Notes under the pieces: generated by a model | What the model was told of the DNA's origin: nothing | Seen by the model: the letters and a program-made list of their open reading frames with translations, nothing else | Databases searched by the model: none | Sequence record: MN871445.1 | Direction: 5' to 3' (one strand) | Length of the DNA: 64,000 bases | Translations under genes and position numbers: made by a program | In this document: piece by piece, positions 5,662 through 45,595 of the stretch | How positions within the stretch are numbered: position 1 is the first letter of the stretch | Layout of the letters: the number at the start of each line of letters is the position of its first letter

Positions 5662-6954
5662 ATGACTGGGTTGGTGAACACCCCACAATCAGAATTACCG
5701 AATTCCCCGACGTCGTATGCCGAAGTTCATCAGATGGTGACTGAACTCGCGCACCAACAAAACGACATTAGCAAAAAAGACCAGCAGGTGCAAGAACACA
5801 CTCAGGTCGTTGACGAGCTTCGCAATACTGGCGACATGATATCCGCATTGGGGGCTATCGTTAAATACAATATTGATGGCAAGCCAATGTCGCCGTTCCA
5901 GTCTTCACTGATGAAAAATGCCTTATGGCATAGTGGAAGCATCAGTCAAGAAGCGTATAACAGCGATACCGTCATCTCTATGGAGTCCTTACGCAAAATC
6001 CTGGCCGACATATGGGTTGCAATTAAAAACAGCCTAAAACGTCTTTTAGAGCGTTTAATTGACTTCTTAACGACATACTACGGAATGCTAAATACCGTAG
6101 AAGATTTGGCTTTGAAATTAAAAGCCATACTCAAAGAAAATAATTGGCAGACCGTAACGGTAACCTCGTTTCCATCTAACAATGCGCGCAAAATTGCCGT
6201 TGGTGGAAAACTGAAGTCAACCTGGGTGGAAGACATCGCTGGAACATTGACGGTATTAGCGGACTCGGACAAAAATGTCATTGACGCAATTGGTGACTTT
6301 AATCTTCGCGCTACCGACCAGGTAATTAAAACATTAAAAACGGATAAACTTCCCGATTTCAATTGGGCTGTGTTATCCGGCACAATCGGTACCCTGCGGC
6401 GGACTATGACTGCCACCATATCACGATATGGCGTGACATCATACGCCAAGCCTTTTGGTATTGAAACCTATTACTGTAGTGGTGTATTACCTGGCGAATG
6501 GCAATTGGGCTGTAAACAAATTCCAATTCAAAATGCCGATAGTCAGCATGATGCTGCGCGAGCAATCATTGAGGGTATGGGTGATCAGTATTTCGTCATC
6601 CTGTCTAAAGAACAAGCAGGGCCCGATGCTTTGCCATTACCTTCCTTAAACGTCATTGAATCTGCATGCGACGATATCATCAAAGTAGTCACTACGTTGA
6701 AAGATTCTACTCGCAAACTGGATGTAGAACTCAACGGCACCTTGAAAAAATCCATTGATACAATCGATGGACTGATGCACCGCATTCAGGGAAGTACCGA
6801 AATCAAAGATCGAGAAGCGGTGGACTTCGTCATGCGGGCGACTCAAATATCCAGTAAACTTAGTCGTCCTTATTTGCAATTGCTGGGAAATATCCTACCC
6901 GCATACACTCGGGCCTTATTGCAATGTGTTCTGGTCTATCGTGATGGAGCATAA
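5662..6954 (+). CDS. Inner head protein, phiKZ gp93-family paralog 3
   Basis: ISMESLRKILADIWVAIKNSLKRLLERLIDFL motif after a propeptide; SGVLPG motif matches SNVLPG and SGILPG in other paralogs. Confidence 0.8.
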   Translation: MTGLVNTPQSELPNSPTSYAEVHQMVTELAHQQNDISKKDQQVQEHTQVVDELRNTGDMISALGAIVKYNIDGKPMSPFQSSLMKNALWHSGSISQEAYNSDTVISMESLRKILADIWVAIKNSLKRLLERLIDFLTTYYGMLNTVEDLALKLKAILKENNWQTVTVTSFPSNNARKIAVGGKLKSTWVEDIAGTLTVLADSDKNVIDAIGDFNLRATDQVIKTLKTDKLPDFNWAVLSGTIGTLRRTMTATISRYGVTSYAKPFGIETYYCSGVLPGEWQLGCKQIPIQNADSQHDAARAIIEGMGDQYFVILSKEQAGPDALPLPSLNVIESACDDIIKVVTTLKDSTRKLDVELNGTLKKSIDTIDGLMHRIQGSTEIKDREAVDFVMRATQISSKLSRPYLQLLGNILPAYTRALLQCVLVYRDGA

Positions 6955-29320: not shown

Positions 29321-31885
29321 TTACTCTTCTGGGAAATTGAACCCACCCAGATCATCTTCGTCGTTTGTTTCTTTTGTTCCCGGCTCAGGCTCACCCTCAC
29401 CAAAACTACCAAAATCATCAGCGCCCGTGTCAGCCGGCGGAGTTTCAGATTCAGTACCGTTTTTGGTTGCCAGTTGTTTCATAACTTGCTGTACCACCAG
29501 AGAAATATTAGTCACTTTCTCCAATCTAGCAGCCATGAAATTATAACCCGGGTTATCATCGTCATTACCGATATTAACGAGTTTATAAAGCTCCGGCATG
29601 ATGTTATTTTGTATCATCCAGTCTACCGCATAATTATTTCTGAACGCCTGGTAAATGGCAGTGGCCTGCATTCCAGCTTCGGTCCCCAGCGTTTCGGTAA
29701 TAACTTGTTCATTAACATACAGTGGCAAGGTGACGTCTAACAATGCTAAGAAATCATTCACATCTTGCAGCTGTGTCGCTAAACGTGCGGTATCCATGGT
29801 TGGTAAAGTGAGCTTCAGAGAGTTAAGATAACGTTCCATGATTTCACTGTAACGGATCTTATCTTCTTCACGATAATAATCTTTCAATTTAGCCTTGTGC
29901 TTATCAATCGCCTCCTTCAGGCTCTCGAGTAAGAATCCATTCGATACGGTATAGATCTGCACCAAATATTTCATTTGTTTCAGAAGTATGGCCTGTTTCT
30001 GGGCTGACCGTTTAGCCAACAGCAGGTTACTCGAGAAGATAGTTGCAGCAAACTCAACACCCTGAGTAGCATCAATAATTTCCGGCGGGATACCAATACC
30101 CATAAACATCATATTTTTGATACTCGTGGACAACTCATTATCCGGACGAGCTAAAGACGATGTTGTTTCCGTGGTGGTTAGTTTCGTATTCGGGTATTGG
30201 GGGTGTCCTGAAATACTCCACGTAATACCCGCTTTTTGCAACATATCCAGCTGTGTTCTTGGGTCAGTAACCCCCAAAGGAAATGCCGAGTTCTGAGTTT
30301 TAGCAAACTCATGCTGGATGGTTTCAACCGTTTTCCACGGATCGGGGTCCTGCTCGTCAAGTAAGATCTCATTCTCGCGGCGCGGGATACTATTGCGGAT
30401 AGCCCCCTGAACATCAGCAAACAGTAGCAGGGAACGTAAAGCCCCAATGATTTTAGCATCGGACAGTAAACTTTTGCCCAACCCAGCATTGGTGTAATCA
30501 AAAGCAAAGTATGCACACTGCTCTACTGGGATGTACACGATGTTGGTACGCATATTCGCCAGAGAACGAGAAAGCATAATTGCATATGCAGAACGCTCAA
30601 CGTCTGCAAGTTCCACGTTCTCACCATGCAGCCCCCGCTTCAATCGAATTAACAGCTCTTTTTTCATGAGCTGACCATACGCGTGAAGTAACTGAAGACT
30701 ATCGTATTTATTGGCTTTTTCGTTTGGACCAAAATACGTTTTGACGTTTTCCAGGATGGTGCCGGCTTGGTTATTATAATTATCCATCGGACTTTGCATG
30801 TTCGATGTTAATTGATTATAATAATCCTGAGATGAAACTCGGGTAACCGGATTACCGTATTCATCGATTAATCCGAAATAACCCAAATGGTCCGTCGGAG
30901 AACCGGGGCGATGGATTGGAATCAGTGATTCCGAAGGCCAACGGATGACCAATGGATTACCTTTACTTTCTTTACCGCCGCCACGTGAAGAAATATTCAC
31001 TACCGGAGTAGTGACTGACCCACGGCGCGCAAATAAGGCAGAATCGAGAGCTTCCAATTCCTTATCCCGTTGATTATCCTCAACAGAGATCCTACCGTAA
31101 AGCCTGGTTTTTCGCAATGCGTCTGCACGTCGTTTATCGTGGAGTTTCGGCAGTTTGAGGTTGTCCAAGTTATCCAGAACTTGTAAATGGTCATCAAACC
31201 AAACCTTGGCTACGGCAGGCTGGGTTTCTGGAATAAGCGAATATGCCTCCAACGAAACCGTTGCTTTTGCAGCATTATTTTTTGCATCCTCCACACCAGC
31301 GTAGCCTGGACCTAAAATACCTACTGATTTTACGGTCATATCCGGGTTTAATGCAGCCTGATATGACTCTAATGAAATGTCCGTTTTTTGGTTGATGATG
31401 TCATCAAGACTAGATTCAGGAATAACCACCAATGGATAACTGCCGGTCTCAAATAGGGCTTGTTCACAAATTGGTAACAGTAAATCGTTAATTTTATAGT
31501 CCTGTGTGAAATGTTCCTTCATTACGTTGGTCAAATCACCAACGAGTTCTGGGGGTAGTTCACACTTATCTGAGGCCCATCCTAATTCGAATGTGGTTAA
31601 ATCCTTAGGAGCCACAATTAGGGACGTCATAATTTCTTTTGCCAAACCAAGGTCAGGCAAAATTTGCATTAGGTTATTGGTGTCGTCAATATCGGAAGCT
31701 TGTAATTTACTGATGCGTTCCAAGCTACCGTGGTCTGGAGCGATATCGGAACCTTGACTGGTTTGATTGGTTGAACCGCTACGCACCAAAGACGGGACCA
31801 TTTTTGTTGCGATGGCCTGTGCCAGTTTATTCTCCCTAAAAAAGGGGATTCTGGCAAATTGGCTCGTCAATGTACTATTAGACAT
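29321..31885 (-). CDS. Probable portal protein (phiKZ gp129-like)
   Basis: 854 aa; ILPDLGLAKEIMTSLIVAPKD, ALFETGSYPLVVIPE, WPSESLIPIHRPG; ISLE/VSLE processing sites; divergent from a large structural gene as in phiKZ relatives. Confidence 0.75.
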   Translation of the reverse strand: MSNSTLTSQFARIPFFRENKLAQAIATKMVPSLVRSGSTNQTSQGSDIAPDHGSLERISKLQASDIDDTNNLMQILPDLGLAKEIMTSLIVAPKDLTTFELGWASDKCELPPELVGDLTNVMKEHFTQDYKINDLLLPICEQALFETGSYPLVVIPESSLDDIINQKTDISLESYQAALNPDMTVKSVGILGPGYAGVEDAKNNAAKATVSLEAYSLIPETQPAVAKVWFDDHLQVLDNLDNLKLPKLHDKRRADALRKTRLYGRISVEDNQRDKELEALDSALFARRGSVTTPVVNISSRGGGKESKGNPLVIRWPSESLIPIHRPGSPTDHLGYFGLIDEYGNPVTRVSSQDYYNQLTSNMQSPMDNYNNQAGTILENVKTYFGPNEKANKYDSLQLLHAYGQLMKKELLIRLKRGLHGENVELADVERSAYAIMLSRSLANMRTNIVYIPVEQCAYFAFDYTNAGLGKSLLSDAKIIGALRSLLLFADVQGAIRNSIPRRENEILLDEQDPDPWKTVETIQHEFAKTQNSAFPLGVTDPRTQLDMLQKAGITWSISGHPQYPNTKLTTTETTSSLARPDNELSTSIKNMMFMGIGIPPEIIDATQGVEFAATIFSSNLLLAKRSAQKQAILLKQMKYLVQIYTVSNGFLLESLKEAIDKHKAKLKDYYREEDKIRYSEIMERYLNSLKLTLPTMDTARLATQLQDVNDFLALLDVTLPLYVNEQVITETLGTEAGMQATAIYQAFRNNYAVDWMIQNNIMPELYKLVNIGNDDDNPGYNFMAARLEKVTNISLVVQQVMKQLATKNGTESETPPADTGADDFGSFGEGEPEPGTKETNDEDDLGGFNFPEE

Positions 31886-31923: not shown

Positions 31924-34602
31924 GTGTCCAGCACTTATCAGGAACTCTATCGCCAAGACATTTTCACGCTGGTGAGAACCATGGTTGTGAAAAGCGTTGC
32001 TACGGCGGAGGCCATAAACTCTGAATTAAGTGGAATGGGGTATGCGGTATCGTCAGATGAAACGACCTGGAAATACTACAAAAATATATCCGGGCAGTAT
32101 CATTCTACAGACACCCTAATGCAGGTGACATCTCTTGATAGTTTAGAGACCATTGATTTTACGGTGGAAAACCTAGCCATTAATGTGGCGACTAAAGAAG
32201 CCTACGCATATGGTTCTAGTTATTATACCAACCTCGTTTCTCAATATCCTTTACAAGAACAATTAATACTGGGCATTCTTAACCCAGTCGATATCGATAC
32301 CGCCATAGCGGCCGATGATAATGAAATCCTTTACTATGACCAGAATCTGGTTGAGCCCAACGAAACCAATTTAATACCTTCATTGCAGGCGTGGACAAAA
32401 GCATTCTTTTTAAGATGGGCCCACCCCGCTTACGACATGGTTGATGATTTATATCGTGCAGCAGTATTGGCACTTTACTGGTCGAAAATGCCCGTACAGA
32501 TTGAACTCATACGTTTGCGTAATTGCAAGACCAGATATGCACATAGTTTTCACATATGGACTTATCTGGAATCTAATGGGCATTTGAGGCCGTACAAAGA
32601 TTACCTTACCACCAAACAAGCATTGTGGTTGTATCGGAATGTTAATTACCTGCAGCTCAATGCTGGCAAGAAAGAGATTCAGTCAACCTTAATAGAACAC
32701 ATCATGACTGAACGAAACCTGCCAGTCGCGTCGTATGACTTGGCGCACGATATCACTGATTTTGAAGAACTGGAAGATTTGTTGCCAGCCATTACCATGT
32801 TGCGGTCTAGTAGAAACACCATTGACTCGACCACAAATTCAAACGCAGGGCAAACCGTTCAAGCCATCCTGAACAAAGAAATAAAACTCGCAAGAGATAA
32901 TGGCAACACACTCACGGATGATGAAAGTAGCATTACCTCCGACATGCAAACTTCGATCACAAGTCGATTGTCGACAAAGGTCCTAGAGTCCAACATGTTG
33001 GTATCCGACGCGGGTGACGTGTATCCGTATGCATCAGTTCTATGGAACGAATGGTTGCACAAAGGAGTGACCGGATACTACACAGCGAATATTCAAGTAA
33101 ACAACCCATCAACTGGCGACATTATGTCGATGACTCCGGTCGATGCATTTATTGTTTATTTGTATTGTTTCAATCGCAGTGTGGGTATCACCATGGATAC
33201 CATACCCGATGTGCCTGCTTGGCGAGTCAGAAAAATACCATTACCGACGCTGTCTGATTTACGAAAAATAGTTGATAGTGACTATGTCGATGATGATAAA
33301 CTGCAATGGATCTTAGATTCAAATGTAGTTATCACGAACATGCCGTCGCGCCAAAGCTTTTTTGATACCATGTTGTCCGTGCATGATGCTCAGACAAATC
33401 AGTACTTTTATTATTCTGAACACGAACACAAAACAGTGTATGGCCAATTGGAATGTGCGCTTAATGCCTGTTATGACACCGTGTTATGTGTATTAGACCC
33501 GCAACATCGCACCTTTGAAGAATACTTCACATTAAAGGGATGGGCATTAGATAATCTTAGCATTGATTATTACACCACCATCGCTGCCGATGTATTGAAG
33601 TATGCGACTGCCCAAGATTTAACCAACGCTAAGTCAGTCAAAGACATTCAGACCGCCATGCTGTCTCTAATGACGAAGATGTCGTCCTACTCTACGCAGT
33701 GGTTACAATCCATCAACGGAGATACGTTGAAGTTATCTGACGGCGCCAATCATCGCTTTGGTGATGATGCGACTCAGCTATTCAGTCATACTTATTTAAA
33801 AGGCAGTATACCTGAAATTATCGGACTTAAAACCGTAATCTACGATCGTGAAGAATTAGATATATTTGCTGATTCAAACATGGAAGATACAGCCTGGCTG
33901 CAAATAAAGGATTATGCCGAAGTAGATCCTGCACCAGACGTCACCTACGTGAGTCAAGGTTATGATTATAGTGCGGTTAGAAATCCAACACCATATGCGA
34001 AATTACGTATACAGGACCTGGTGGAAAAGTTACTTATTACCGACCTGCCGGGTTTAACGGTGACCCAATTGGAACCTATTGACCCAGACAATCCAGATAA
34101 TATCGATATCAATGATCTTATCCAGGTGTCTGATTTACCAGGATTGGTTTACCCGTTAGCATACCTCAACCCAGTCGATGAACTATCTGGATTGGTTATT
34201 CCGTTATCAAGTATGATAACCAACACAGTACTGGATGGTTTAGGTGTATCGTTAAGTTCTAGAATCACTGAGGTGGATCTTAATGGTCTTTCCATTGCAC
34301 TTAATTTGGAATTGCCAAATAACGTCCTCGATGGTTTGGGGTTAACTTTAGGTAGTCAAATCACCAAGACGGAATTGGATGGGTTGGATCTAGGCATTGC
34401 TTACTCTTTGGGCAATACTGTTTTGAATGGCCTGGGCATTTCCTTAGCGCAAGAACTGGCCACCACGGAACTCAACGGGTTAGGTATATCTGTAGCAGCA
34501 TCAATCACCGACGTCAATCTGGATGGTTTGGTGTTCCCAACGAATTACGGGGTGGGTAATGGACTCATTAACACGGTACTTAACGGTATCTTTATTCAAT
34601 AA
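31924..34602 (+). CDS. Virion structural protein (phiKZ gp128-like) with C-terminal 16-aa repeats
   Basis: GTG start after GGAGG; WKYYKNISGQYH and AHSFHIWTYLES conserved blocks; repeats at 34204-34539. Confidence 0.7.
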   Translation: MSSTYQELYRQDIFTLVRTMVVKSVATAEAINSELSGMGYAVSSDETTWKYYKNISGQYHSTDTLMQVTSLDSLETIDFTVENLAINVATKEAYAYGSSYYTNLVSQYPLQEQLILGILNPVDIDTAIAADDNEILYYDQNLVEPNETNLIPSLQAWTKAFFLRWAHPAYDMVDDLYRAAVLALYWSKMPVQIELIRLRNCKTRYAHSFHIWTYLESNGHLRPYKDYLTTKQALWLYRNVNYLQLNAGKKEIQSTLIEHIMTERNLPVASYDLAHDITDFEELEDLLPAITMLRSSRNTIDSTTNSNAGQTVQAILNKEIKLARDNGNTLTDDESSITSDMQTSITSRLSTKVLESNMLVSDAGDVYPYASVLWNEWLHKGVTGYYTANIQVNNPSTGDIMSMTPVDAFIVYLYCFNRSVGITMDTIPDVPAWRVRKIPLPTLSDLRKIVDSDYVDDDKLQWILDSNVVITNMPSRQSFFDTMLSVHDAQTNQYFYYSEHEHKTVYGQLECALNACYDTVLCVLDPQHRTFEEYFTLKGWALDNLSIDYYTTIAADVLKYATAQDLTNAKSVKDIQTAMLSLMTKMSSYSTQWLQSINGDTLKLSDGANHRFGDDATQLFSHTYLKGSIPEIIGLKTVIYDREELDIFADSNMEDTAWLQIKDYAEVDPAPDVTYVSQGYDYSAVRNPTPYAKLRIQDLVEKLLITDLPGLTVTQLEPIDPDNPDNIDINDLIQVSDLPGLVYPLAYLNPVDELSGLVIPLSSMITNTVLDGLGVSLSSRITEVDLNGLSIALNLELPNNVLDGLGLTLGSQITKTELDGLDLGIAYSLGNTVLNGLGISLAQELATTELNGLGISVAASITDVNLDGLVFPTNYGVGNGLINTVLNGIFIQ
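34204..34539 (+). repeat. Seven tandem 16-aa (48-nt) protein repeats, consensus L-x3-I-x4-L-[DN]-G-L
   Basis: LSSMITNTVLDGLGVS / LSSRITEVDLNGLSIA / LNLELPNNVLDGLGLT / LGSQITKTELDGLDLG / IAYSLGNTVLNGLGIS / LAQELATTELNGLGIS / VAASITDVNLDGLVFP. Confidence 0.9.
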
Positions 34603-34619: not shown

Positions 34620-35552
34620 ATGGCTAATCCATACGCTTACCCCTCTAGGGTGTTGGTGTATAGTTTAATCAATACCACCAACGGCACTCGTTACAATCCA
34701 ACGGATGTGGCTATTACAAACATCCGTGAAGATACCACGACGACCGATTTTAGGGATACAAAAGCGGACGTTGTGGGGGTAACTGAAGAAGGGTTTTCGG
34801 GGACAATAACGGTGAGGTATGCTCGGCTTGATGTAGCCGAAGTATTTGGATTAGTGACTAACCTGGCAGTTCGCTGGGAAGGGCAAACAAGTACGTTGGA
34901 GTTAATGGAATACATTAACTCGTTATACGGAACGAAATTTAATGAAGAAGATGTAGTCATTGAATATTTTAATCCCAATACCTTACCAATCACGGTCGCG
35001 GTGACAATGTCACCCACCTCCCCTGCATGGAAGGGCACTCTCAACGTCCAAGTGGTTCCGTTTAGTCAGGCATTAGCCGCCGGATTAACCAGCCGGACAG
35101 TGCAACCCTGGAGCTACCCTACGGGTCAAGTGGTTAAAACACAAGGCCCGCTATATCTTCGTCCGTATGATTTTGATTCGTATTGGGCCTTACTGCGACC
35201 CCTTCAAGTAGGGGTTCAGACAAATGCGATATCTCAATCCATAGCAACCGTAATCAACGGATTTGTCCCTATCACACATGCATGGACCGTGTCGATGCTC
35301 GCTACATCACACAACCTGACCAGTGATGTAGATGTCAACGGATTGCCGGCACTTTATATTGTTTATGCCGGTGCTCCTACGGCGACTTATACCCATCGGT
35401 TGGGTGTAGACCGAATTATCGTGATACGTTTATCAAATACGCTTTGTACCGATGTAGCCGGCTATTTAGTTATGCACTTCAGCGAACAATCCGTTGATTT
35501 AGATACCGTATTCTCCGTGAAATCAATCGGTCAGCTCGAGGTGGGATCATGA
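34620..35552 (+). CDS. Virion/tail-associated protein with shared N-terminal adaptor domain
   Basis: GFSGTITVRYARLDV...YGTKF...PAWKGTL domain shared with 35549, 38156 and 40297. Confidence 0.65.
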   Translation: MANPYAYPSRVLVYSLINTTNGTRYNPTDVAITNIREDTTTTDFRDTKADVVGVTEEGFSGTITVRYARLDVAEVFGLVTNLAVRWEGQTSTLELMEYINSLYGTKFNEEDVVIEYFNPNTLPITVAVTMSPTSPAWKGTLNVQVVPFSQALAAGLTSRTVQPWSYPTGQVVKTQGPLYLRPYDFDSYWALLRPLQVGVQTNAISQSIATVINGFVPITHAWTVSMLATSHNLTSDVDVNGLPALYIVYAGAPTATYTHRLGVDRIIVIRLSNTLCTDVAGYLVMHFSEQSVDLDTVFSVKSIGQLEVGS

Positions 35553-35995
35553 GTGGATATTCGGACATCATTGCAGCACTAAATGCAAAAAACTCGGCTA
35601 CGCTTGCCCAGCCCCTGACAACAACAAATGTTAGTCTTGGAACAATGGAGTCCATCAATACTGCAATCAGCAGCTATAACACAAGGGCGCCATTGACTCC
35701 AACTGTCGATGGTGGGTTTACGGGTGGTGGGGCATATGTAGCCTGGCGTAGGATAGACTTTGGTACGTTGTTCAAAGGAATCCCGATCAGCATCAAAGAT
35801 AGCGTCAGCACTACAGTCGCTGGACTAATACCCAGATTGAATGAAATGTACGGGTACACCATCGGCACCGATGATGTGGTTAACAATCTATTGCCTTCAC
35901 CTGCCGCGGGGCAATCTGCGGTAGTAACTATCACCGCATCCAGTACATCAAATAAATTCGTGGGTAGCTTCACCATCACCTACCGTAAAAGTTAA
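35549..35995 (+). CDS. Virion/tail-associated protein, adaptor domain only
   Basis: GFTGGGAYVAWRRIDF...YGYTI...KFVGSF; ATGA overlap. Confidence 0.65.
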   Translation: MSGYSDIIAALNAKNSATLAQPLTTTNVSLGTMESINTAISSYNTRAPLTPTVDGGFTGGGAYVAWRRIDFGTLFKGIPISIKDSVSTTVAGLIPRLNEMYGYTIGTDDVVNNLLPSPAAGQSAVVTITASSTSNKFVGSFTITYRKS

Positions 35996-36026: not shown

Positions 36027-36052
36027 TAATTAATAAAGGATTGGCAAATATC

Positions 36053-36913
36053 ATGGCTAAAGCAATTCAGCGTACGGTACTGGCAGCATCACTGTCTACC
36101 GCCAAAATTTTGGGTTTAGCGTACCCTTTGGTGCCTAATACCACTTTAAATGAAAAACTGTCTATTCAGTCCGGCGTAATTAGCTCGGACAGTACAGTTA
36201 CACCCACCTTAAAATATTGGGTAATTGGTGATGGCGGGCACAACATCACCTCGAATGGCTCAAGCCAACCTTACGTTACTCCGGTCCAACACCGACCATC
36301 TGATTTCGGCCTATTTAACCAGGTGCCGTTTGTGTTGCGTTTACCGGCAGATGACCTGACTGCTGCGCAACAAGCTAACTATGGGCTTCGTCGCGTAGAG
36401 ACGCATGGTGGTACTCAGTACGTGGCTTATTATGCAAAACGTCTCGATACCAGCACTACCGCGGTTACGCTACACAAAACCGTTATTGTTGACGGGGTGT
36501 CTACGACCACGACGTTTGTCCCAGATGAGTCGAATCTAAACCCAACGAAACCTGTGGTTACCAGTACCACCACCACTACGGCGAACGGTACTTATTTGTC
36601 CGCATCGGCGCCACTGACTATTACCTTCAGTGAATTTGATGCAACTGAGTTCTTAAATGTCGCCAAAATCCTTTATGGCGATGAAAATACCGCAGCTATT
36701 TCTGAAATTGCTTTAGTGACTGGTATCGATTTATCGGTGCCATTAACTAACTCCAGCTCCACGGCAAGCACTTTCAACGAAATCATCATGGCACAAATCT
36801 ATACGCATTTTAGTGCTTATTATGCGGTCGCTTTCGCTGAGCAGGGCTTTGAATTCACCGTGGATGTTGGCCACACTGAGCCATTGGCTGCTGAGGGTAA
36901 TGTGAGTGCCTAA
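36053..36913 (+). CDS. Virion structural protein (phiKZ gp139-like)
   Basis: TLNEKL...PTLKYWVIGDGGH...VPFVLR...YYAKRL...ISEIALVTG; alternative TTG start at 36041. Confidence 0.65.
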   Translation: MAKAIQRTVLAASLSTAKILGLAYPLVPNTTLNEKLSIQSGVISSDSTVTPTLKYWVIGDGGHNITSNGSSQPYVTPVQHRPSDFGLFNQVPFVLRLPADDLTAAQQANYGLRRVETHGGTQYVAYYAKRLDTSTTAVTLHKTVIVDGVSTTTTFVPDESNLNPTKPVVTSTTTTTANGTYLSASAPLTITFSEFDATEFLNVAKILYGDENTAAISEIALVTGIDLSVPLTNSSSTASTFNEIIMAQIYTHFSAYYAVAFAEQGFEFTVDVGHTEPLAAEGNVSA

Positions 36914-37511
36914 CTATATTCCTTATCACGTTATCGTGAAAGAGGAATGGGCATCCACATACCGCATCGCGGCAATCGACCCAGGGAGCGATACCCTGGG
37001 TTTTACTATTATTGATATTGACCTTCGTACTGGGAAAATCATCGTAGTTTATTCAGATACGTATGAAGCCTCACGCCAGTTGCGTTACCTCAATCCGCAG
37101 TACGTCGAATCCGTAGGTAATATGCGCGCACGGTTTGAATGCCACGAGCGTACGTTAGTCAATCTCTTCAATCAGTTTAAACCGCATAGCGTTATCGCAG
37201 AATCCGCATTCCTGAAAAAGAGGTTTCCGCATAGCTTTGAATCTTTGACCATTGGTCTTGAGATGATACGTCGTGCACTTTATCAATATAACCCAACGCT
37301 TAAGTTAAAAACAGTAGAACCTACCGCAGCGAAAAAAGTCGTTATATTAAAAGGCGATCCTTTTAATGATAAAGCATCTGTACGTCGTGGTGTTTTAGCT
37401 TACCCTGAACTCCATTGGGAAATCGACTCATCCCAGTTAGATGAGCATGCTTTTGACTCTGTTGCTATTGGTATTTATGAAGCGTTATCCGTCATCGGAG
37501 AGTTTGTATGA
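36906..37511 (+). CDS. ruvC: RuvC-like Holliday junction resolvase
   Basis: AIDPGSDTLG, VIAES, DEHAFDSVAIG acidic motifs. Confidence 0.85.
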   Translation: MPNYIPYHVIVKEEWASTYRIAAIDPGSDTLGFTIIDIDLRTGKIIVVYSDTYEASRQLRYLNPQYVESVGNMRARFECHERTLVNLFNQFKPHSVIAESAFLKKRFPHSFESLTIGLEMIRRALYQYNPTLKLKTVEPTAAKKVVILKGDPFNDKASVRRGVLAYPELHWEIDSSQLDEHAFDSVAIGIYEALSVIGEFV

Positions 37512-38110
37512 AGGGTAAGTATTACGTTATTGAAGGTTTGGATGGCACGGGGAAAAGCACCCTGATTGAGAAGCTTAAAGCGGCCCATCCTGAATGGGTT
37601 TTTGTGGCTGAACCCGGAGGGACACCGATAGGGCAAATGCTGCGCGCTTTAGTGAAGGAAGGTTTGGGTGAAGAAGTAATTACTCCCATTTCTGAACTGC
37701 TCATGTTCTCGGCCGCCAGGACACAACTGTTGTCTCAAATTATCGCACCTGCGTTAGCCGAAGGGAAAACAGTCATCAGCGACCGTAACTGGGTATCCAC
37801 ACTGATGTATCAGGGTCATGGGTTTGGTACTTCCGCGATTAATACCGTGCTGGATTTGCATAAGCTTATCTTAAAAGACCTCCCGGTACCGACCGGTTAT
37901 TTATATCTATCACTCTCTATGGAACAAAGGGCGTTGCGTTTACGTCACCGTGGAGAAGCCCCGGATCGTTTAGAATCGCGAAATAGTGATTATTATGTGC
38001 GGGTACACGCTGGATACGAAGCCTGGGCGAAAGCCAACCCCAATGTGTTTAAATTGGACGCGTCAAAATCTTCTGATGATGTATTCACATCCGCACTAAC
38101 ATTCATTTAG
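37508..38110 (+). CDS. tmk: Thymidylate kinase
   Basis: IEGLDGTGKST, EPGGTPIG, ELLMFSAAR, DRNWVSTLMYQG. Confidence 0.95.
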   Translation: MKGKYYVIEGLDGTGKSTLIEKLKAAHPEWVFVAEPGGTPIGQMLRALVKEGLGEEVITPISELLMFSAARTQLLSQIIAPALAEGKTVISDRNWVSTLMYQGHGFGTSAINTVLDLHKLILKDLPVPTGYLYLSLSMEQRALRLRHRGEAPDRLESRNSDYYVRVHAGYEAWAKANPNVFKLDASKSSDDVFTSALTFI

Positions 38111-38135
38111 AGGGCTTTGGCCCTCTTCTTTTTTT
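38109..38135 (+). terminator. Intrinsic terminator
   Basis: AGAGGGC-TTTG-GCCCTCT then T-tract; overlaps the tmk stop. Confidence 0.8.
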
Positions 38136-38155: not shown

Positions 38156-40282
38156 ATGCACGCCAATCGCATACAAAAAGTGCTGGACCTGGTTGCTGCC
38201 GCAGAGCCCTCACTTCCAATCCCTATAGCCACTGGAAATATCAGCATATCTAATATCACCCCGGTGACTGGAAAGGATTATAATACTGATGCAACTTTCG
38301 GGGCCATCGACCAAGATACGCCAGTACAATATCGCGGTTCTACGGTATTGAATTATGGTCGAATTGATATCAGTCATTATTTTCCCAACAATGTGGTTTA
38401 TGAATCACCTAATTTGGTGACCTACGCTGATTTATTGGCCGAACTAAATGCCAAACATCAGTTAGATGTTTATGCCGATGAGATTCACGGGGCAGATACA
38501 CTCCTACCGCAAGATGGCCAAATTACCATCGCAATTAATGATGTTAACTCACCGGCGTATTGCGGAACCATCTCTCTATTGTTCAGTAAAGATACCGGGT
38601 TATTGTATCAGCGGGGGATTGAATACACGTTTATTACTCAAGCTGCGCTACCCATACTGGGGTATGTGGAGACGCAAGTTTCTGGATTACAATACTCCAT
38701 TAACGGCTCATCATGGAGTAATGAATTAACCCTCACCAAAACAGACAATGGTAGATATGCCATCCGACCAGTATCTCAGGTGGCAATTAATGCCCTGACT
38801 ACTATTCGTTTGCGTGGGGCTAATATTTATCTGCAGGATGTGGGTAATATTAACGCCATTCAAATTAAAACGTTATTGAAATATCGTAGTACTACTAATG
38901 GTCGTAATTTTTGTGCTGGTATTACCACCCTAACTTCGGTGGCCGATGATTGCTTTATTTATGCAACTGATTTGACTTCGGCCGACAATTTCTTTTATGG
39001 ATGTGTAGGTTTAACGGCGATACCTAGTAAGTTATTTGGTTACTGTGAATCTTTAACTTCGGCAAAGGGATGTTTTAGCGGTACTGGAATTACAGCCGTC
39101 CCAGCACAACCTTTCGGTGGTGCAATTAATTTAAAATATCTTGATAACGTGTATGCAAATTGCCTCTCTTTAGCCAGCGTATCTGGAGATGCTTTTTTGG
39201 GGCTCTATAACGTTCTATCCGCGTCGCGGGCATTTGCGGGATGTATTTCCCTTACTAGCATTCCAAAATCAATATTAGCGCCATTGACTGCGATTCAAGA
39301 CGTCAGTTATTTTATCGCTTCTACTGGAATTACAGTTGTAGATAAAACCTTCTTCAATCAGTCAACGACCATCCGGGATATATCGGGTATTTTTTATCGT
39401 TTGGGTTTAACTAGCCTACCGCAAACTTTATTGACTGGAATGACCGCGTTAAATCGGATGGACTATTTCTGCTATGGGTGTTCTGGGATTACTGTTATCC
39501 CCTATGCTTTTTTAGACGGACTTAATCAACTCGAATACGCTGATTATGCTTTTTCTAAAACAGGAATTATTCAGTTACCGAATAACTTCTTTACTAACTG
39601 CCGTCGTCTTTTAAGTATCGATTACTTATTCGACGGGTGTGTTTCTCTACTAAGTATTCCTACTGGATTCTTATCGCCGCTTCAGCGACTGGTTTCAGCG
39701 GTAGGCATTTGGCATAACTGCACCTCTATTACGTCTTTACCTGCAGACATCTTGACAGGCAATCCAAATTTAGTTACAATACAGTGGTTGTTCTATAATA
39801 CCAACATCACTAGTATTCCGGCAGGTTCATTGAATGGACTTACTGGAGCTAAAGATATTACTGGGTTATTTGCGGGTACTCGTATTTCTTCAGTGCCTGC
39901 GGGTCTACTAGCAACGGCAACAAACCTTCAAGTAATCGCACAGCTATTTTGGAAGTGTTCTTTATTGACTAATCTGCCGGCGACTACTTTCTCGACAAAT
40001 AGTGCGCTCACTTCGGCGTATGGTGCACTAGCTGGTTGTGGGTTACTTACTGGAGCCATTACGACTTGGTTCGGTAATAATAGTTCACTCAAACAAATTT
40101 CTGGTATGCTGCAAGGCTGCACTAGCATTACTGGAAGTTTAGGTGCTCTTCGCACGCAGTTGACCTCAGTGGATTGGCTGAACAACGATTATGTCGAAGG
40201 GGTAGTTGCACTGGATACGCAATTAACGGATTATACTTCGATAGGTATTGCCTATAAAACCGTGGTTGCTGATTTAATTTAA
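38156..40282 (+). CDS. Adaptor-domain plus BspA/TpLRR-like leucine-rich-repeat protein, probable virion adhesin
   Basis: N-terminal YRGSTVLNYGRIDI...PAYCGTI domain; about 15-16 repeats of 26-27 aa (F-x2-C/T-x2-L/I-T-x-I-P-x2-L-F). Confidence 0.8.
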   Translation: MHANRIQKVLDLVAAAEPSLPIPIATGNISISNITPVTGKDYNTDATFGAIDQDTPVQYRGSTVLNYGRIDISHYFPNNVVYESPNLVTYADLLAELNAKHQLDVYADEIHGADTLLPQDGQITIAINDVNSPAYCGTISLLFSKDTGLLYQRGIEYTFITQAALPILGYVETQVSGLQYSINGSSWSNELTLTKTDNGRYAIRPVSQVAINALTTIRLRGANIYLQDVGNINAIQIKTLLKYRSTTNGRNFCAGITTLTSVADDCFIYATDLTSADNFFYGCVGLTAIPSKLFGYCESLTSAKGCFSGTGITAVPAQPFGGAINLKYLDNVYANCLSLASVSGDAFLGLYNVLSASRAFAGCISLTSIPKSILAPLTAIQDVSYFIASTGITVVDKTFFNQSTTIRDISGIFYRLGLTSLPQTLLTGMTALNRMDYFCYGCSGITVIPYAFLDGLNQLEYADYAFSKTGIIQLPNNFFTNCRRLLSIDYLFDGCVSLLSIPTGFLSPLQRLVSAVGIWHNCTSITSLPADILTGNPNLVTIQWLFYNTNITSIPAGSLNGLTGAKDITGLFAGTRISSVPAGLLATATNLQVIAQLFWKCSLLTNLPATTFSTNSALTSAYGALAGCGLLTGAITTWFGNNSSLKQISGMLQGCTSITGSLGALRTQLTSVDWLNNDYVEGVVALDTQLTDYTSIGIAYKTVVADLI

Positions 40283-40296
40283 TATCGGAGGTCCAC

Positions 40297-40746
40297 GTGG
40301 CAGTAACAACTATACTAACAAAACAAACCGCAACGTTAATTTATGATTTAATTAACGAAGCCAATGAAATCAATATTAACGCAACCATTCTTTCGCTCAG
40401 TGCGCCTACTGCGCTGAGTGGGGATGCTACAGGTAAAAATACTTCAGTTGTTGGGACTCCCTTACCTGGCTCTGGTTATAAGAACACCGTGAGGTTGACT
40501 TATGACCGATTAGACATGACGGTATTATTAGAAAAATTAGTTAAGCAGGTAGTTGTACCTAACCTCACTCAAACCACGGATGTGTTGAGTGCATTTAACG
40601 AAAAATATGGGTTTCTCTTGGCGGCCAGTGATGTGGTTAACCAATCAATTACCCCCACTGGCGGAACACAATCCATTACCGTAACAATGGCAGATTCATG
40701 TCCTGCATTTATTGGCGCCTTTGAACTCACTGTTTCTCCTTCTTAA
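40297..40746 (+). CDS. Virion/tail-associated protein, adaptor domain only
   Basis: GYKNTVRLTYDRLDM...YGFLL...PAFIGAF; GTG after GGAGG. Confidence 0.65.
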   Translation: MAVTTILTKQTATLIYDLINEANEININATILSLSAPTALSGDATGKNTSVVGTPLPGSGYKNTVRLTYDRLDMTVLLEKLVKQVVVPNLTQTTDVLSAFNEKYGFLLAASDVVNQSITPTGGTQSITVTMADSCPAFIGAFELTVSPS

Positions 40747-40758
40747 CCGAGGTGTGGT

Positions 40759-41370
40759 ATGATTACGGTAGATATTCTTAAATTGATTGGTGCAGCGCAA
40801 GTAGCTGTAGCCCATCCGCAAGGAAGCTTATTTGTTGAAACATTTAACGGCATTACGGGAACCACGACATTGGCAGCAACCGTATCGGGTACGGAAGCTC
40901 TTGCAGCATTCGAAAAATTGGATGTAACAAATCAGGTTAAAGTCAATGCTATTTTTGACCAGTATCGCAAAGTAATAACAGGTTGTGGTGCAACTACGGT
41001 ATTTGCTAATGGCGTACATCGTCAACGTAACTACCGTAGTTTCATGGCACTGATGATGGCGGTTGCTTTAACGATCATGGCGGTCACTATCGTCGCCATT
41101 GAATGTTATATCGGCATCATGACTAAGACTCAATTGGAAAGCGGTCAGTTTACGGTTCCGTTGATGTGCCTTGCATTGGTGGTGTGGAGTTATAATGGAC
41201 TGCTGACAAAAGAAAACCGGGAAGCCATCGCTGCTGGGTTGGCTCGAGCACCCAGTGGTTTTGTTAACAGTTTTCTGGATTCTATCCGCGGACGTAATCA
41301 GTACCAGACCACGATGCAACAACAACCCGCGCCTCAGCCGGACGACCCACAAAATCAAAGACCACAATAA
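40759..41370 (+). CDS. Two-transmembrane-helix membrane protein
   Basis: Two hydrophobic segments and a Q/P-rich C-terminal tail. Confidence 0.7.
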   Translation: MITVDILKLIGAAQVAVAHPQGSLFVETFNGITGTTTLAATVSGTEALAAFEKLDVTNQVKVNAIFDQYRKVITGCGATTVFANGVHRQRNYRSFMALMMAVALTIMAVTIVAIECYIGIMTKTQLESGQFTVPLMCLALVVWSYNGLLTKENREAIAAGLARAPSGFVNSFLDSIRGRNQYQTTMQQQPAPQPDDPQNQRPQ

Positions 41371-41372
41371 CG

Positions 41373-41407
41373 GCATAGGAGGAGGCTTTCGCCTCCTCCT
41401 TTTATGC
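41373..41407. terminator. Bidirectional terminator, two-tier hairpin
   Basis: GCATA-GGAGGAGGC-TTTC-GCCTCCTCC-TTT-TATGC. Confidence 0.9.
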
Positions 41408-42652
41408 GGTCACTAATTCAATTCTTTTAATATCCATTCTTCTTACTTCGGCATAGGTTCTTGGTTGCGGACCAACTAAACTGTTGTTGACAATCCCAGA
41501 ACTGCTAGCAGATACGGTATGTCGGGTCGATTGGTCAACAAGATAACCATCAATAACGACGACATAATCATCGATTTCTTTTTCTACTACGTATTCAGCT
41601 AATCTACCCATATTAACGCGCATGGGTTCGGTGGGGGCCGTATCAGACTGAATATAAACCCCAGGTAACCCAGTGGGTTGCATCGCGGCATATTCCACAA
41701 CAACGTTTGTTGCGTCCACTACGATTAAAAAAGTTTGGGGTGAATTCAACATTTTTGTAATAGTGTCGTCAGATAAGAAAATATCGAGGTTGACGCGATC
41801 TGGGTTATGGTCTGATTCGTAAGGCACATAAACATCGGACCAGTCGATATAGTTTCTAGAATCGAAATAGCGTGAAACCAAATCCATATTTCGGGTATTG
41901 ATTTTCAACATTCGATTACCGACAACATCATAATTGTTATCCAGGGCAAACAAATATCCCATCCAGGATAACAACACAGTTTTTCCGAATAAATCAACGT
42001 TTGTTTTGACGTACACTGATTCATAACTCGGTACGTCTGGCTCGGGGTCAACCACCATGTCTGAGGTGATGTCCACTTGGGTAATTGAACCGATACCCGA
42101 AAAATCAAGAAAACCCACTAATGGCTTATTTGCTTTACGTGCTGAAATGACGCCATCAAGGACATAGACACCATCTGAGGTGCTGGATATCCGATGACAA
42201 AACCCATTGACGGTCGCAATACAATTTTGCTCTACATTGCTGTAATTTACTCCGGCCTTAGATAAAAGAATATCTACCTGTTGGTCGTAATCTAAAACGG
42301 CATCTGGGGATTTGGTGTGGTCACTTGGTTTTGATTTGAATCCCCAGTAAAATGCATCTACGTGGCGGACGGTCGTAGTGCCCTCAACCAGAACACTATA
42401 GGTTACTGGAAGTGACGTATTGCCGATTTGACCTAGCCACGTAACAAAAGTAATTGTCAATACTCTGAGGTAATCTGGCAAATCATCGAAGTCAACCGTA
42501 GCCGCGGAACTGTACGCCGGATTCGTAACGGTCGCTTTTATCTCCGAGTAAGTATTGTACACTTGATACAGGGGAATGGTGGATAAATCGATGGACTTCC
42601 ATTCGACACCACCCCCCTTGACACGGGCGATAGCGCTAACGTATGTATACAT
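41402..42652 (-). CDS. Probable virion structural protein
   Basis: 416 aa, beta-rich, CIATVNGFCHR and YLFALD motifs; divergent from the tail fibres. Confidence 0.6.
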   Translation of the reverse strand: MYTYVSAIARVKGGGVEWKSIDLSTIPLYQVYNTYSEIKATVTNPAYSSAATVDFDDLPDYLRVLTITFVTWLGQIGNTSLPVTYSVLVEGTTTVRHVDAFYWGFKSKPSDHTKSPDAVLDYDQQVDILLSKAGVNYSNVEQNCIATVNGFCHRISSTSDGVYVLDGVISARKANKPLVGFLDFSGIGSITQVDITSDMVVDPEPDVPSYESVYVKTNVDLFGKTVLLSWMGYLFALDNNYDVVGNRMLKINTRNMDLVSRYFDSRNYIDWSDVYVPYESDHNPDRVNLDIFLSDDTITKMLNSPQTFLIVVDATNVVVEYAAMQPTGLPGVYIQSDTAPTEPMRVNMGRLAEYVVEKEIDDYVVVIDGYLVDQSTRHTVSASSSGIVNNSLVGPQPRTYAEVRRMDIKRIELVTA

Positions 42653-42735: not shown

Positions 42736-44160
42736 ATGGCAACGACCTATGCTTACCCCTACAACCCAAATGCAAATTTATCCGCTGCATTTATCACCGG
42801 GGAAACGCACACAATTACGACGGACCCATCCAGAACTTATAACTGGTTTGTTCCGTTTGCAGCCCCTTTTTTCTCAAAGGGTTTGGTATTAACACACGTT
42901 ACTTCGGGACGGGTTCTCACCCCTGGAGTGGATTTTAATTTTGGTTTGGAATATCATATTTTCAATAGTACTGTTGCTTTTTATCCAGTCTACGGCGCTA
43001 TTGTTATTATGGACAGTACTTTGATCGGTACCTTTTCCATCAGCTATTATACCCTGGGTGACCGGTACGCAATCAACGAAGCCAAAGCGCTGGCTTTGGT
43101 TGCTAATACCGCGATTGACCCAAGACAAACGTATTGGGAATCCGTTACTGATATCCCTTCTCAGTTTCCGGTATCAGACCATCAGCATGATGTATCTGAT
43201 TTAACTGGCATGGCTGACGTGGTTGCCTCGATTAACGCACTGACCGCATCACTGACCAATGAAGGCGGTAAATGGTGGCAGGCACTGAATGAGCACCTGA
43301 CCGACTATAATGACCCTCACCATGTGTTGGACATGATTCCTAGTGGCGGAACATCGATTGCTAAGGCAACACAGCAGCAGGCCGAGCAGGGCACCGATAA
43401 CACCGCCTATGCTACATCTTTGCGCGTAGCGCAATATGCTGCCGCAAATATCTTCCCTACTTTGAATAATCACATCAACGCCACGGGTAACGTCCACGAC
43501 CTTACGGCCGCGGATCTTAATCTTGGTAATGTTCCAAATTATGCAGCGGCCACCCAAAACGATGTGGACAACAACGTTACTCCGGGTAGCTTAATTACCA
43601 CGGTAAGTATTGTCCAGTACATCGTAAATAATGCTCTTCAGAATGCATCTTTGGACCAATATCAAACCAGTACCGATGTTACAAACGCTATTCAGTCGGC
43701 AATGGGTTCAATTTCTAATTATCCAATCGCTACTGATGAATTAGCCACATTAGGTCAAGATGCTGCTACTCTGATGACACCACGCGCAACCACACTGACC
43801 ATTGATGGTTATCAGATGAATACTACTCTCGGTGTGTGCGTGTTAGCTACCGAAGTTACGGCCTATCTGGCGCAAGGTAGTATTACCGATACCTGTTTGG
43901 ATATGGTTAACAGCGTGGTGTATACCTATAACACCAATACCTCGGCATGGGAGCTGAATAGCGGGGTTCTTCCAACCACTTATCTGAATAATGGAAGAAC
44001 TTATTATAATCGGGTTTCCGGAAAAGGCTTTTTGTACCGTAATAACGCGCTGGTTAACGTTACTGGAAATGCGATTAATAATGTTACGGTATCAACCAGC
44101 GCACCGCCAGTTTCCACCACGGGATATGCCGATGGGTATGTTTGGTACCAAGTGGTATAA
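42736..44160 (+). CDS. Tail fibre protein 1 (phiKZ gp145/146-like)
   Basis: YPYNPNANLSAAFITGETH, FAAPFF, FPVSDHQHD, H-x6-PH fibre motifs. Confidence 0.75.
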   Translation: MATTYAYPYNPNANLSAAFITGETHTITTDPSRTYNWFVPFAAPFFSKGLVLTHVTSGRVLTPGVDFNFGLEYHIFNSTVAFYPVYGAIVIMDSTLIGTFSISYYTLGDRYAINEAKALALVANTAIDPRQTYWESVTDIPSQFPVSDHQHDVSDLTGMADVVASINALTASLTNEGGKWWQALNEHLTDYNDPHHVLDMIPSGGTSIAKATQQQAEQGTDNTAYATSLRVAQYAAANIFPTLNNHINATGNVHDLTAADLNLGNVPNYAAATQNDVDNNVTPGSLITTVSIVQYIVNNALQNASLDQYQTSTDVTNAIQSAMGSISNYPIATDELATLGQDAATLMTPRATTLTIDGYQMNTTLGVCVLATEVTAYLAQGSITDTCLDMVNSVVYTYNTNTSAWELNSGVLPTTYLNNGRTYYNRVSGKGFLYRNNALVNVTGNAINNVTVSTSAPPVSTTGYADGYVWYQVV

Positions 44161-44173
44161 TTGAGGAAGAATC

Positions 44174-45595
44174 ATGTCAACGATTACCTGGACGTACCCT
44201 GAAGACTTAACGGGGGAGGCTTCCTCTAATTTAGTCTCCAATGAAGTACATACGGTTCCATATGAGAACACGTACGCCTTTGTAATGAACTACGGCCCCT
44301 TCTATGGGGATTCCGTGGTGATCACCAAATCTTCTGATGGAAGCATATTGACAAAAGGCATTGACTATAAGTGTCTTTACCTGTACCCTGAGGCCGTAGC
44401 TAAATCAGGTATGCCAGTATATTCTGTTATCCAGATTCTGGATAGAACCATTGCAGAAGACCTGAACGTAACCTATCAAGTTGTCGGTGGTATCTTTTCA
44501 TCCTACGCGTATGCCCTGGATGAAATTATTGCATTGCTGCAAATCGATAACCGCAGCATTTCTTGGGAAAATATCCTCAATAAGCCTACTACATTTCCGC
44601 CGGCCCCGCATATCCACGATGCCAGCGACCTGTATGGGCTGCAATCACTAAATGATGCCATCAATGATCTGAAGCAGGCTATTCTTTATGGTGATGTGGC
44701 GAGCCACGACCAGATTTATGACCGCATTGCCACGGTTAAAACTCAGGTCACCACCGGATATACTGATGCGGATACCGCGCTGCAAACGCAAATCACTCAG
44801 AATACAACCGATATTGCGACCTTAAATACCAATTTATCCGCGCAATTGACGGCCTTGTCACAAACGCTGACATCACATACGACGAATCAGAATAACCCAC
44901 ACAACACTACATATGTTCAAGTAGGAGCCCCATCGATTACTTGGACCATTAACGGGGTAACGTTTAACCAGAGCATCACTTTAACGCCGGCCAATATCGG
45001 GGCGTTGTCTACTTCTACGGGCGGTACGGTCGCTGGTGCGACAACATTTAACGCCGCGCTGACTGTTGCTGGTCAGGGTAGCTGGTTGACTAAAACGGGG
45101 GTATACCAGCCTTCCGGCACCTCTGATTATAAGGTCGATGGGATTCGATTCCAAGCCAACAGTAACCAGTATACTGACATATTCTGGTACAATACTACTG
45201 GCGGTCCACACACCGCATTTTACGTCAAAGATGGGTCTACTGTCTCTATCTTTAGAATGTGGGCGACCGGCGGGATGACCATCCCCGGGAACCTGGGTGT
45301 TGGCTCTGCAATTTATCAAACTGATGGTAACCTCACGGGTACTGCTTGGGGTGGCTTCTTATCGGATTATTTGAATAACCGATTTAACACCGTTTCCAAT
45401 ACCTCTGCTAGCACTTATGTCAGAGGTATTCGGTTTGGTGCCCAGCAATCATTCCATAAACGTGACGGTACGGAATATGTAGCTGGCGGAGTAATGACGG
45501 CATGGGCTGACTTCGGTAACTCGGATTATTGGGTATACTTACGTCCGCTACAATACAACATCAACGGCAACTGGACTACTGCGCCGTACACTTAA
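44174..45595 (+). CDS. Tail fibre protein 2 with enterobacterial-phage-type tip
   Basis: YPEDLTGEASSN, YGPFY, FPPAPHIHD, NNPHNTT; C-terminal IYQTDGN...LRPLQYNINGNWTT. Confidence 0.85.
   Translation: MSTITWTYPEDLTGEASSNLVSNEVHTVPYENTYAFVMNYGPFYGDSVVITKSSDGSILTKGIDYKCLYLYPEAVAKSGMPVYSVIQILDRTIAEDLNVTYQVVGGIFSSYAYALDEIIALLQIDNRSISWENILNKPTTFPPAPHIHDASDLYGLQSLNDAINDLKQAILYGDVASHDQIYDRIATVKTQVTTGYTDADTALQTQITQNTTDIATLNTNLSAQLTALSQTLTSHTTNQNNPHNTTYVQVGAPSITWTINGVTFNQSITLTPANIGALSTSTGGTVAGATTFNAALTVAGQGSWLTKTGVYQPSGTSDYKVDGIRFQANSNQYTDIFWYNTTGGPHTAFYVKDGSTVSIFRMWATGGMTIPGNLGVGSAIYQTDGNLTGTAWGGFLSDYLNNRFNTVSNTSASTYVRGIRFGAQQSFHKRDGTEYVAGGVMTAWADFGNSDYWVYLRPLQYNINGNWTTAPYT

Follow-up and report, generated by a model that had tools for sequence, protein, structure and literature searches.

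A DUF7941 protein with a leucine-rich-repeat domain in the Klebsiella jumbo phage KpHz_2: a putative baseplate-anchored receptor binder

How nucleus-forming jumbo phages recognise their hosts is poorly understood, and a gene that joins a phage-specific module to a long leucine-rich-repeat (LRR) domain raises the question of what such a protein binds, and from where. We analysed a 64,000-nucleotide (nt) stretch of sequence record MN871445.1 (the window), in which positions 38156 to 40282 of the plus strand encode a protein of this kind. Its N-terminal part belongs to the family DUF7941 and is homologous to gp127 of phage phiKZ; its C-terminal part forms a predicted horseshoe of 16 LRRs. It is probably a virion protein, in which a DUF7941 baseplate-filament anchor would carry an outward LRR head that binds the surface of Klebsiella. 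The DUF7941-LRR architecture is a kind already published for phage Goslar (2026), and the gene studied here is a further example. New are the single paralogue with a large extra domain, purifying selection combined with the highest local divergence, a variability hotspot at repeat position 16, and a parallel LRR fusion to gpI of P2-like prophages.

The 2127-nt gene is 100% identical over its length to phage KpHz_2 (MN871445), named as a "Serratia phage". This record (270,429 bp) is unannotated and gives Klebsiella pneumoniae as the host and sea water as the isolation source. The nearest named relative is Klebsiella phage vB_KvM-Eowyn (98.1% identity over the 2127 nt), in which the orthologue PP187_gp154 is annotated just as 'gp353'. 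Eowynvirus is placed in the Chimalliviridae (nucleus-forming jumbo phages), and the 2026 genome announcement of a third Eowynvirus reports a nuclear shell, PhuZ and split RNA polymerases (PMC13757433). About nine depolymerase tailspikes have been reported per Eowynvirus (preprint 10.64898/2026.05.12.724579). The KpHz_2 LRR protein itself is mentioned in no paper that we found. A search of sequencing runs recovered close variants of the gene as DNA from wastewater, freshwater and surface metagenomes in about ten studies; clean RNA evidence was not found in this search.

What is known of DUF7941 comes from two recent studies. In the phiKZ atlas (Nat Commun 2026;17:5148, PMC13250141), gp127 sits in the outer baseplate, where the gp139 spoke ends, and gp130 lies above the fibre-docking sites. 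The Goslar paper (bioRxiv April 2026; Sci Adv 2026;12(45):eaei4524, PMC13742148) describes DUF7941 as chimallivirus-specific and composed of an N-terminal domain (NTD), a disordered linker and an optional C-terminal domain (CTD). Mass spectrometry of virions detected all ten Goslar DUF7941 proteins, with copy numbers in the hundreds to thousands for two of them, and purified gp22 forms filaments, for which head-to-tail docking is predicted (PMC13742148). Three members, gp86, gp92 and gp161, carry carbohydrate-active or LRR domains that were proposed to be host-recognition heads. First host contact was proposed to be made by a 'DUF7941 fiber cloud' with its anchorage at the baseplate periphery (PMC13742148).

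Anatomy of the protein

The gene encodes 708 amino acids (aa) and divides into the following parts, for which structure prediction was done with AlphaFold 2 (AF2) and confidence is given as predicted local distance difference test (pLDDT).

38156..40282, plus strand: DUF7941-LRR gene, 708 aa, ATG start, no internal stop, orthologue of Eowyn PP187_gp154
38156..38596, plus strand: globular DUF7941 NTD, residues 1-147 (Pfam PF25613, gp127 profile match, AF2, fold match)
38597..38746, plus strand: DUF7941 linker, residues 148-197 (Pfam match reaching profile position 205 of 276, low pLDDT, alignment)
38747..38890, plus strand: beta-rich connector and LRR N-cap, residues 198-245 (tblastn boundary, AF2 model)
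38891..40162, plus strand: 16 LRRs of 26 or 27 aa, residues 246-669 (self-comparison, motif anchoring, AF2)
40163..40279, plus strand: helical C-terminal cap, residues 670-708 (L-T-D-Y motif, AF2 model)

A model's sequence-only reading of this DNA had taken the protein for a probable virion adaptor, and the N-terminus supports this. Residues 8-197 match Pfam DUF7941 (PF25613) with 42.3 bits against a cut-off of 27 (E 8.6e-11, profile positions 11-205), and a six-frame search of the whole KpHz_2 record recovers the match as well. The family-conserved T44, R69 and G137 are present in the NTD, and the linker, which aligns with the linker of the paralogues, retains the family's Q-A-x-L...G-Y stretch. 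When a profile of the NTD region with 14 orthologous and paralogous sequences was run against the PDB, one sequence was found, phiKZ gp127 (9XQD, E 6e-23), in an entry entitled 'outer peripheral region in the phage phiKZ baseplate complex'. AF2 with the paralogue alignment models residues 1-147 at pLDDT of about 88-92 and predicts residues 148-197 to be disordered (pLDDT 40-52). Searched against the PDB, the NTD model gave 9xqd_0 as its sole significant match (Foldseek E 4.5e-5, probability 1.00, TM score 0.61, 146 columns). The PHROG label of the N-terminal family is 'head and packaging / virion structural protein'. Homology and predicted fold thus support a virion attachment module of DUF7941 type, of the kind that gp127 represents in the outer baseplate of phiKZ.

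Similarity to the LRR modules of other phages starts at residue 197. The fusion point is therefore sharp: NTD and linker are kept, and the LRR domain then replaces the DUF7941 CTD. The family itself is represented by 10 matches each in KpHz_2, Eowyn and Goslar, by 20 in Erwinia phage pEa_SNUABM_54 and by none in 14 control genomes. Of the ten KpHz_2 matches only the LRR gene has a large extra domain, with an open frame of 714 aa against 165-365 aa in the others.

The repeats are regular. When residues 240-680 are compared with themselves, identity peaks at lags 27, 53, 80 and 106, and anchoring on L-T-x-I-P resolves 16 consecutive units of 26 or 27 residues each over residues 246-669, with a consensus of approximately x-L-x-s-a-x-x-x-F-x-G-C-x-x-L-T-S-I-P-x-x-x-F/L-x-x-x. 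The best adjacent-lag identity is 0.33 as against 0.187 +/- 0.011 in 2000 shuffles (z = 13.4), which lies far beyond chance. The count of 16 agrees with the 15-16 repeats that the sequence-only reading had estimated. Fifteen cysteines are spread over the 16 repeats, mostly at repeat positions 8 and 11. The TpLRR subtype, also suggested by the sequence-only reading and built from units of about 23 residues, was rejected, as the unit has 26 or 27 residues throughout.

The solenoid that had been proposed was likewise recovered in structure prediction. From an alignment of 30 sequences AF2 returned a curved LRR horseshoe (pLDDT 84.9 on average, and above 90 all along residues 246-708). Foldseek against the PDB gave 417 matches at E <= 0.001, and the matches listed were all LRR proteins, Bacteroides ovatus 4fs7 among them. 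By VIA-align the best superposition was with the LGR4 ectodomain (Z 26.2, 419 residues, root-mean-square deviation 3.9), followed by other horseshoe LRRs. Neighbours among predicted viral structures were phage proteins annotated as BspA-family LRR or '26-residue repeat', among them one from Klebsiella jumbo phage N1M2 and gp353 of Bacillus phage G, from which the Eowyn gene takes its name. No tail-fibre or tailspike family of PHROG or Pfam was matched, and the fold, as modelled for a single chain, is an LRR horseshoe, unlike the trimeric fibres or beta-helical tailspikes of classical phage receptor-binding proteins. Secretion or cell-anchor domains were absent from the Pfam and NCBIfam scans, which included no signal-peptide-specific test.

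The assignment to BspA-like repeats is less direct. The 708-aa protein stays under every Pfam and NCBIfam LRR threshold (LRR_8 23.2 bits vs 27; TIGR02167 E 1.6), and whole-protein phmmer against the PDB gave weak generic LRR matches at most. Its HMMER relatives (E 1e-59 to 1e-8), among which is a named Tannerella LRR protein, contain LRR_5 and DUF285 alongside BACON, fimbrillin-like or PKD domains. LRR_5 was matched by 8 of 30 homologues and DUF285 by 8 (both at E <= 0.001), and the orthologue P0007 exceeds the LRR_5 threshold (31.3 vs 27.7). Membership in the BspA/DUF285 group therefore rests on homology: the label 'BspA-like' stands through the relatives and fails for the protein itself under curated thresholds. 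With proteins of the BspA, DUF285 and 26-residue-repeat type (PF13306, PF03382, TIGR02167) it shares the 26-27-aa F-x-G-C...L-T-S-I-P unit, one cysteine per repeat, the solenoid and the cap motif, L-T-D-Y, which is common to distant bacterial and phage BspA-type relatives. It differs from the bacterial members in having a phage baseplate-filament module in place of their anchoring parts. In bacteria and protists, LRR proteins of BspA type serve as adhesins that attach to host matrix and other cells.

Descent and variability

Full-length orthologues fall into a close group (82-98% identity) and a second lineage at 36-38%; a pattern scan of IMG/VR added one further orthologue locus. The second lineage is represented by a 271-kb metagenomic chimallivirus contig (L006:11194-19632), at 37% identity, that keeps synteny. 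There the LRR orthologue is followed by seven consecutive DUF7941 genes (272-298 aa), a 385-aa gene outside the family and a 354-aa DUF7941 gene. In KpHz_2 the place of this array is taken by a split copy only, and the other DUF7941 paralogues are scattered through the genome. Compared with the distant lineage, the NTD is 39-45% and the LRR domain 35-38% identical. Both parts have thus diverged together, so the fusion is old and vertically inherited and not a recent cassette swap.

The gene is AT-richer than the major capsid gene (21732-23927), as had been remarked (42.0% vs 54.6% GC). Among the 55 open reading frames (ORFs) of the window (mean 45.0%), its GC content has z = -0.9, within one standard deviation, and AT-richness is therefore uninformative on origin; a foreign origin argued from it was rejected. 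The outliers are the capsid gene itself and an internal-head-protein gene (1896-3323, 55.1%), both about 10 points over the mean of 45%. Their high GC may reflect codon usage tied to very high expression.

Across Eowynvirus lineages the ratio of nonsynonymous to synonymous rates (dN/dS, omega) is 0.04-0.15 in all domains, with dS saturated; the gene is therefore functional. The same values led us to reject an arms-race hypervariability of the whole LRR domain. Of the genes in its neighbourhood the LRR gene has nevertheless diverged most (81.6% identity vs 87-95%, and in a second comparison 89.0% vs 90-99%).

The variability is concentrated at one place. Repeat position 16, the x of L-T-x-I-P, varies in 11 of the 16 repeats among five close orthologues, with a mean entropy of 1.62 as against 0.5-1.3 elsewhere in the repeat (binomial p 4.8e-4; 0.013 corrected for 27 positions), and its dN is 2.5-4.4 times the LRR mean in three informative comparisons. 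DSSP assigns beta-bridges to repeat positions 3-5 and 16-17, and position 16, placed by the canonical LxxLxL register, would be the exposed 'x3' of the concave-face strand. The sequence-only reading had proposed to look for concave-face variability among relatives; a hotspot was found, and its placement on that face follows from the motif. Strong purifying selection, as read from these sequences, argues for a conserved ligand over an arms-race decoy, and the pattern fits a conserved Klebsiella surface ligand with lineage-specific tuning along one strand ladder.

Related phage proteins and the proposed role

The closest published counterpart is Goslar gp161, in which DUF7941 (residues 4-186, profile positions 5-192) is combined with DUF285-type repeats (E 4.5e-22). 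Both phages belong to the Chimalliviridae, and in both proteins NTD and linker are kept while the CTD is replaced by a putative recognition domain of BspA/DUF285 type. The published NTD and disordered-linker anatomy of Goslar gp22 and gp23 likewise matches the predicted disordered linker of the KpHz_2 protein. The two fusions differ in build: the DUF285 match of gp161 is confined to residues 385-456, with about three repeats by eye, and follows an unrelated middle domain, whereas in the KpHz_2 protein a complete horseshoe of 16 turns adjoins the linker. Goslar has three such fusions, among them gp86 with DUF7941 and a TIM-barrel domain, and KpHz_2 has one. The role proposed for the Goslar fusions, a host-recognition head on baseplate-anchored DUF7941 filaments, is the one we propose here, so that the 'receptor-like binder' of the sequence-only reading agrees, by analogy, with a published hypothesis.

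With phiKZ gp127 (and gp126) the LRR protein shares a homologous NTD and its place in the same block, between the homologues of gp128 and gp130. The phiKZ gp127 protein, however, is a 290-aa protein made entirely of DUF7941 (NTD, linker, CTD) and is devoid of a binding domain. Its direct counterpart in the window is the 310-aa gene at 34620-35552 and not the LRR protein.

Beyond the orthologues, the best phage matches to the LRR module (tblastn E 2e-16 to 2e-15) cover query residues 197-681 and lie in P2-like Klebsiella prophages, in genes for a 1008-aa 'tail protein I'. In gp35 of ST16-OXA48phi5.4 (L002:5107-8133) and 14 similar prophage records, a Tail_P2_I wedge domain is followed by Big_2 (Ig-like) and then by LRR_5/DUF285, and the gene lies upstream of one annotated 'tail collar fiber protein'. 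This is a homologous LRR domain on a baseplate protein of phages of the same host genus. The anchor is unrelated (Tail_P2_I and Big_2), the phage is a small temperate myovirus, and identity is about 23%. LRR modules have therefore been joined to a Klebsiella phage baseplate protein at least twice.

Large DUF7941 genes also occur in Erwinia phage pEa_SNUABM_54 (L004:1-7806). Its giant DUF7941-headed genes 00038, 00040 and 00041 encode 893, 937 and 1014 aa, with a 264-aa DUF7941 gene, 00039, between the first two; 00041 carries a related LRR.

From homology, gene context and the published models we infer incorporation in the virion, docking in filaments, binding of a ligand and the nature of that ligand. 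The DUF7941 NTD and its flexible linker would plug the protein into a head-to-tail filament network on the outer periphery of the baseplate. If the polarity is that of Goslar and phiKZ, the linker of the preceding protomer, for example of the gp127-like protein, would grasp the NTD, and the LRR protein's own linker may bind a further NTD. In place of the CTD, the monomeric 16-turn horseshoe would be displayed outward as a binding head, its concave face lined by the L-T-x-I-P strand ladder, where the exposed, lineage-variable x would contact the ligand. The likeliest role would be an initial, reversible attachment to a conserved constituent of the Klebsiella surface, by which the LRR head would supplement tail fibres and depolymerase tailspikes. 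Tentatively, and as a narrower suggestion of which we are far less confident, this monomeric, non-enzymatic head on DUF7941 filaments would bind a conserved capsule-independent component (for instance a fimbrial or outer-membrane protein, or a core glycan), and the same solution would have been reached independently on the gpI protein of P2-like Klebsiella prophages.

Several points weigh against an outward receptor-binding head. The fiber cloud and filament model is itself a proposal, derived from AlphaFold, negative-stain electron microscopy of one protein and copy numbers (PMC13742148). Outside the DUF7941 module the KpHz_2 protein showed no significant similarity to Goslar, in a whole-protein search or by BLASTP against gp86, gp92 and gp161, and kinship therefore exists at the level of architecture and Pfam module only. 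The placement of position 16 on the concave face relies on the motif register and on DSSP beta-bridges and not on coordinates that were measured; the variability signal there comes from five close orthologues, and its omega stays below 1 (0.42 where computable). A preprint atlas of Klebsiella receptor-binding proteins discusses the depolymerases of Eowynviruses and contains the term LRR 0 times. A virion proteome of KpHz_2 or Eowyn was not found in the literature.

The most serious alternative keeps the protein in the virion and turns the horseshoe inward, so that the LRRs bind other virion proteins and, for example, dock tailspikes or fibres on the peripheral baseplate. LRRs are general scaffolds for protein-protein interaction, the gene lies among genes for the baseplate periphery and fibres, strong purifying selection fits a conserved partner within the virion, and the nine or so depolymerase tailspikes of Eowynviruses need attachment points (preprint 10.64898/2026.05.12.724579). 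Yet this is the most diverged gene of the block, with its variability on one exposed strand position, which is more typical of an outward surface, and the parallel gpI-Big_2-LRR protein has adhesin-like domains and adjoins the tail collar fibre gene. We regard such an internal adaptor as unlikely.

An outward head could instead adhere to mucin, an animal or plant surface or another bacterium, which would keep the phage in places where its hosts occur, or it could soak up a host factor as a decoy. That BspA-type LRR proteins are adhesins in general speaks for this, as does the occurrence of close variants in wastewater, freshwater and surface metagenomes; but none of the findings points to it specifically, the habitats are aquatic or sewage (with an isolate from sea water) and not mucosal, and the homologous LRRs on the baseplate protein of Klebsiella prophages point to a bacterial surface as the target. 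We consider adherence of this kind, or a decoy function, improbable.

Very improbable, in our view, is an effector, packaged or expressed to act within the host cell, whose LRRs would bind a host protein there, in the manner of bacterial LRR effectors of secretion systems. Chimalliviruses do inject many virion proteins, and the PHROG label names head and packaging; that category is generic, however, in phiKZ the homologous NTD (gp127) was modelled at the outer baseplate and not in the head, the gene context is that of a baseplate, and the injected families described are PF12699 proteins and not DUF7941. Equally remote is a cytoplasmic or otherwise non-structural protein that has no more than a domain in common with its structural paralogues, for which a terminator-like hairpin parting the gene from its upstream neighbours and the missing literature proteome of KpHz_2 might be cited, against the finding of ten out of ten Goslar DUF7941 proteins in virions and a DUF7941 fold known solely from a baseplate structure.

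A baseplate-anchored LRR head that recognises Klebsiella thus remains the reading we prefer, and it bears on a model drawn from one phage, Goslar. A single DUF7941 paralogue with a large extra domain in the Klebsiella lineage offers a clean genetic and biochemical handle, and because the lineage has just this one fusion, the 'fiber cloud' hypothesis is directly testable in it. Should a capsule-independent LRR receptor head be confirmed, it would be the first experimentally tractable phage receptor binder of LRR type and a direct test of the fiber cloud. A conserved surface receptor of Klebsiella could emerge, which would be relevant to the choice of therapeutic jumbo phages, and the parallel in gpI suggests that LRR heads are a recurrent and overlooked class of phage binding modules.

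The surrounding gene block

The LRR gene sits in a block that corresponds to phiKZ gp126-gp130 and contains the following features.

31924..34602, plus strand: homologue of the phiKZ gp128 baseplate wedge (E 3e-119)
34620..35552, plus strand: full-length DUF7941 paralogue, 310 aa, homologue of phiKZ gp127 (Pfam and gp127 match)
35549..35995, plus strand: NTD-only DUF7941 paralogue, 148 aa (Pfam)
38109..38126, plus strand: terminator-like G+C-rich hairpin with T-run, between the thymidylate kinase stop and the ribosome-binding site of the LRR gene
40297..40746, plus strand: NTD-only DUF7941 paralogue, 149 aa, directly downstream of the LRR gene (Pfam, six-frame search)
40759..41370, plus strand: ORF of 203 aa, whose N-terminus continues a DUF7941 linker, with two hydrophobic helices and a Q/P-rich tail
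41402..42652, minus strand: homologue of phiKZ gp130, the outer peripheral baseplate protein below which fibres dock (E 3e-33; PMC13250141)

The 310-aa homologue of gp127 is a candidate for the baseplate anchor or a filament subunit. The hairpin at 38109..38126 looks like a terminator that parts the LRR gene from upstream metabolic genes. No promoter is named here, as sigma-70-like matches in the region were no commoner than in shuffles. DUF7208, a RuvC-like resolvase and thymidylate kinase (36041-38110), closed off by this strong hairpin, form an insertion within the baseplate block, between the gp126/127-like and gp130-like genes, and the insertion is kept in the 37%-identity lineage.

Past the gp130 homologue follow two tail-fibre paralogues, a fibre assembly protein and a baseplate protein. 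The adjacent fibre paralogues (42736-45595; 474 and 473 aa) have an N-terminal domain in common (phrog_2163) and differ in their C-termini, resembling the shared-N-terminus sets of phiKZ gp131-135; no sequence match to them was found in the PDB.

The two ORFs directly downstream of the LRR gene (40297-41370; 149 and 203 aa) lie in one frame, with a single TAA and 12 nt between them. Translated through the stop, they match DUF7941 profile positions 3-243 and align with a 287-aa paralogue from a distant relative in which the frame is uninterrupted (E 7e-15). Eowyn and the 82%-identity lineage have the same split, which may reflect a stable arrangement of two genes, read-through of the stop, or a DUF7941 linker tethered to the membrane. 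A second DUF7941 match with one in-frame TAA lies outside the window, at 5928-6434 of the minus strand of the KpHz_2 record, and is present in Eowyn at 31218-31724 (minus strand).

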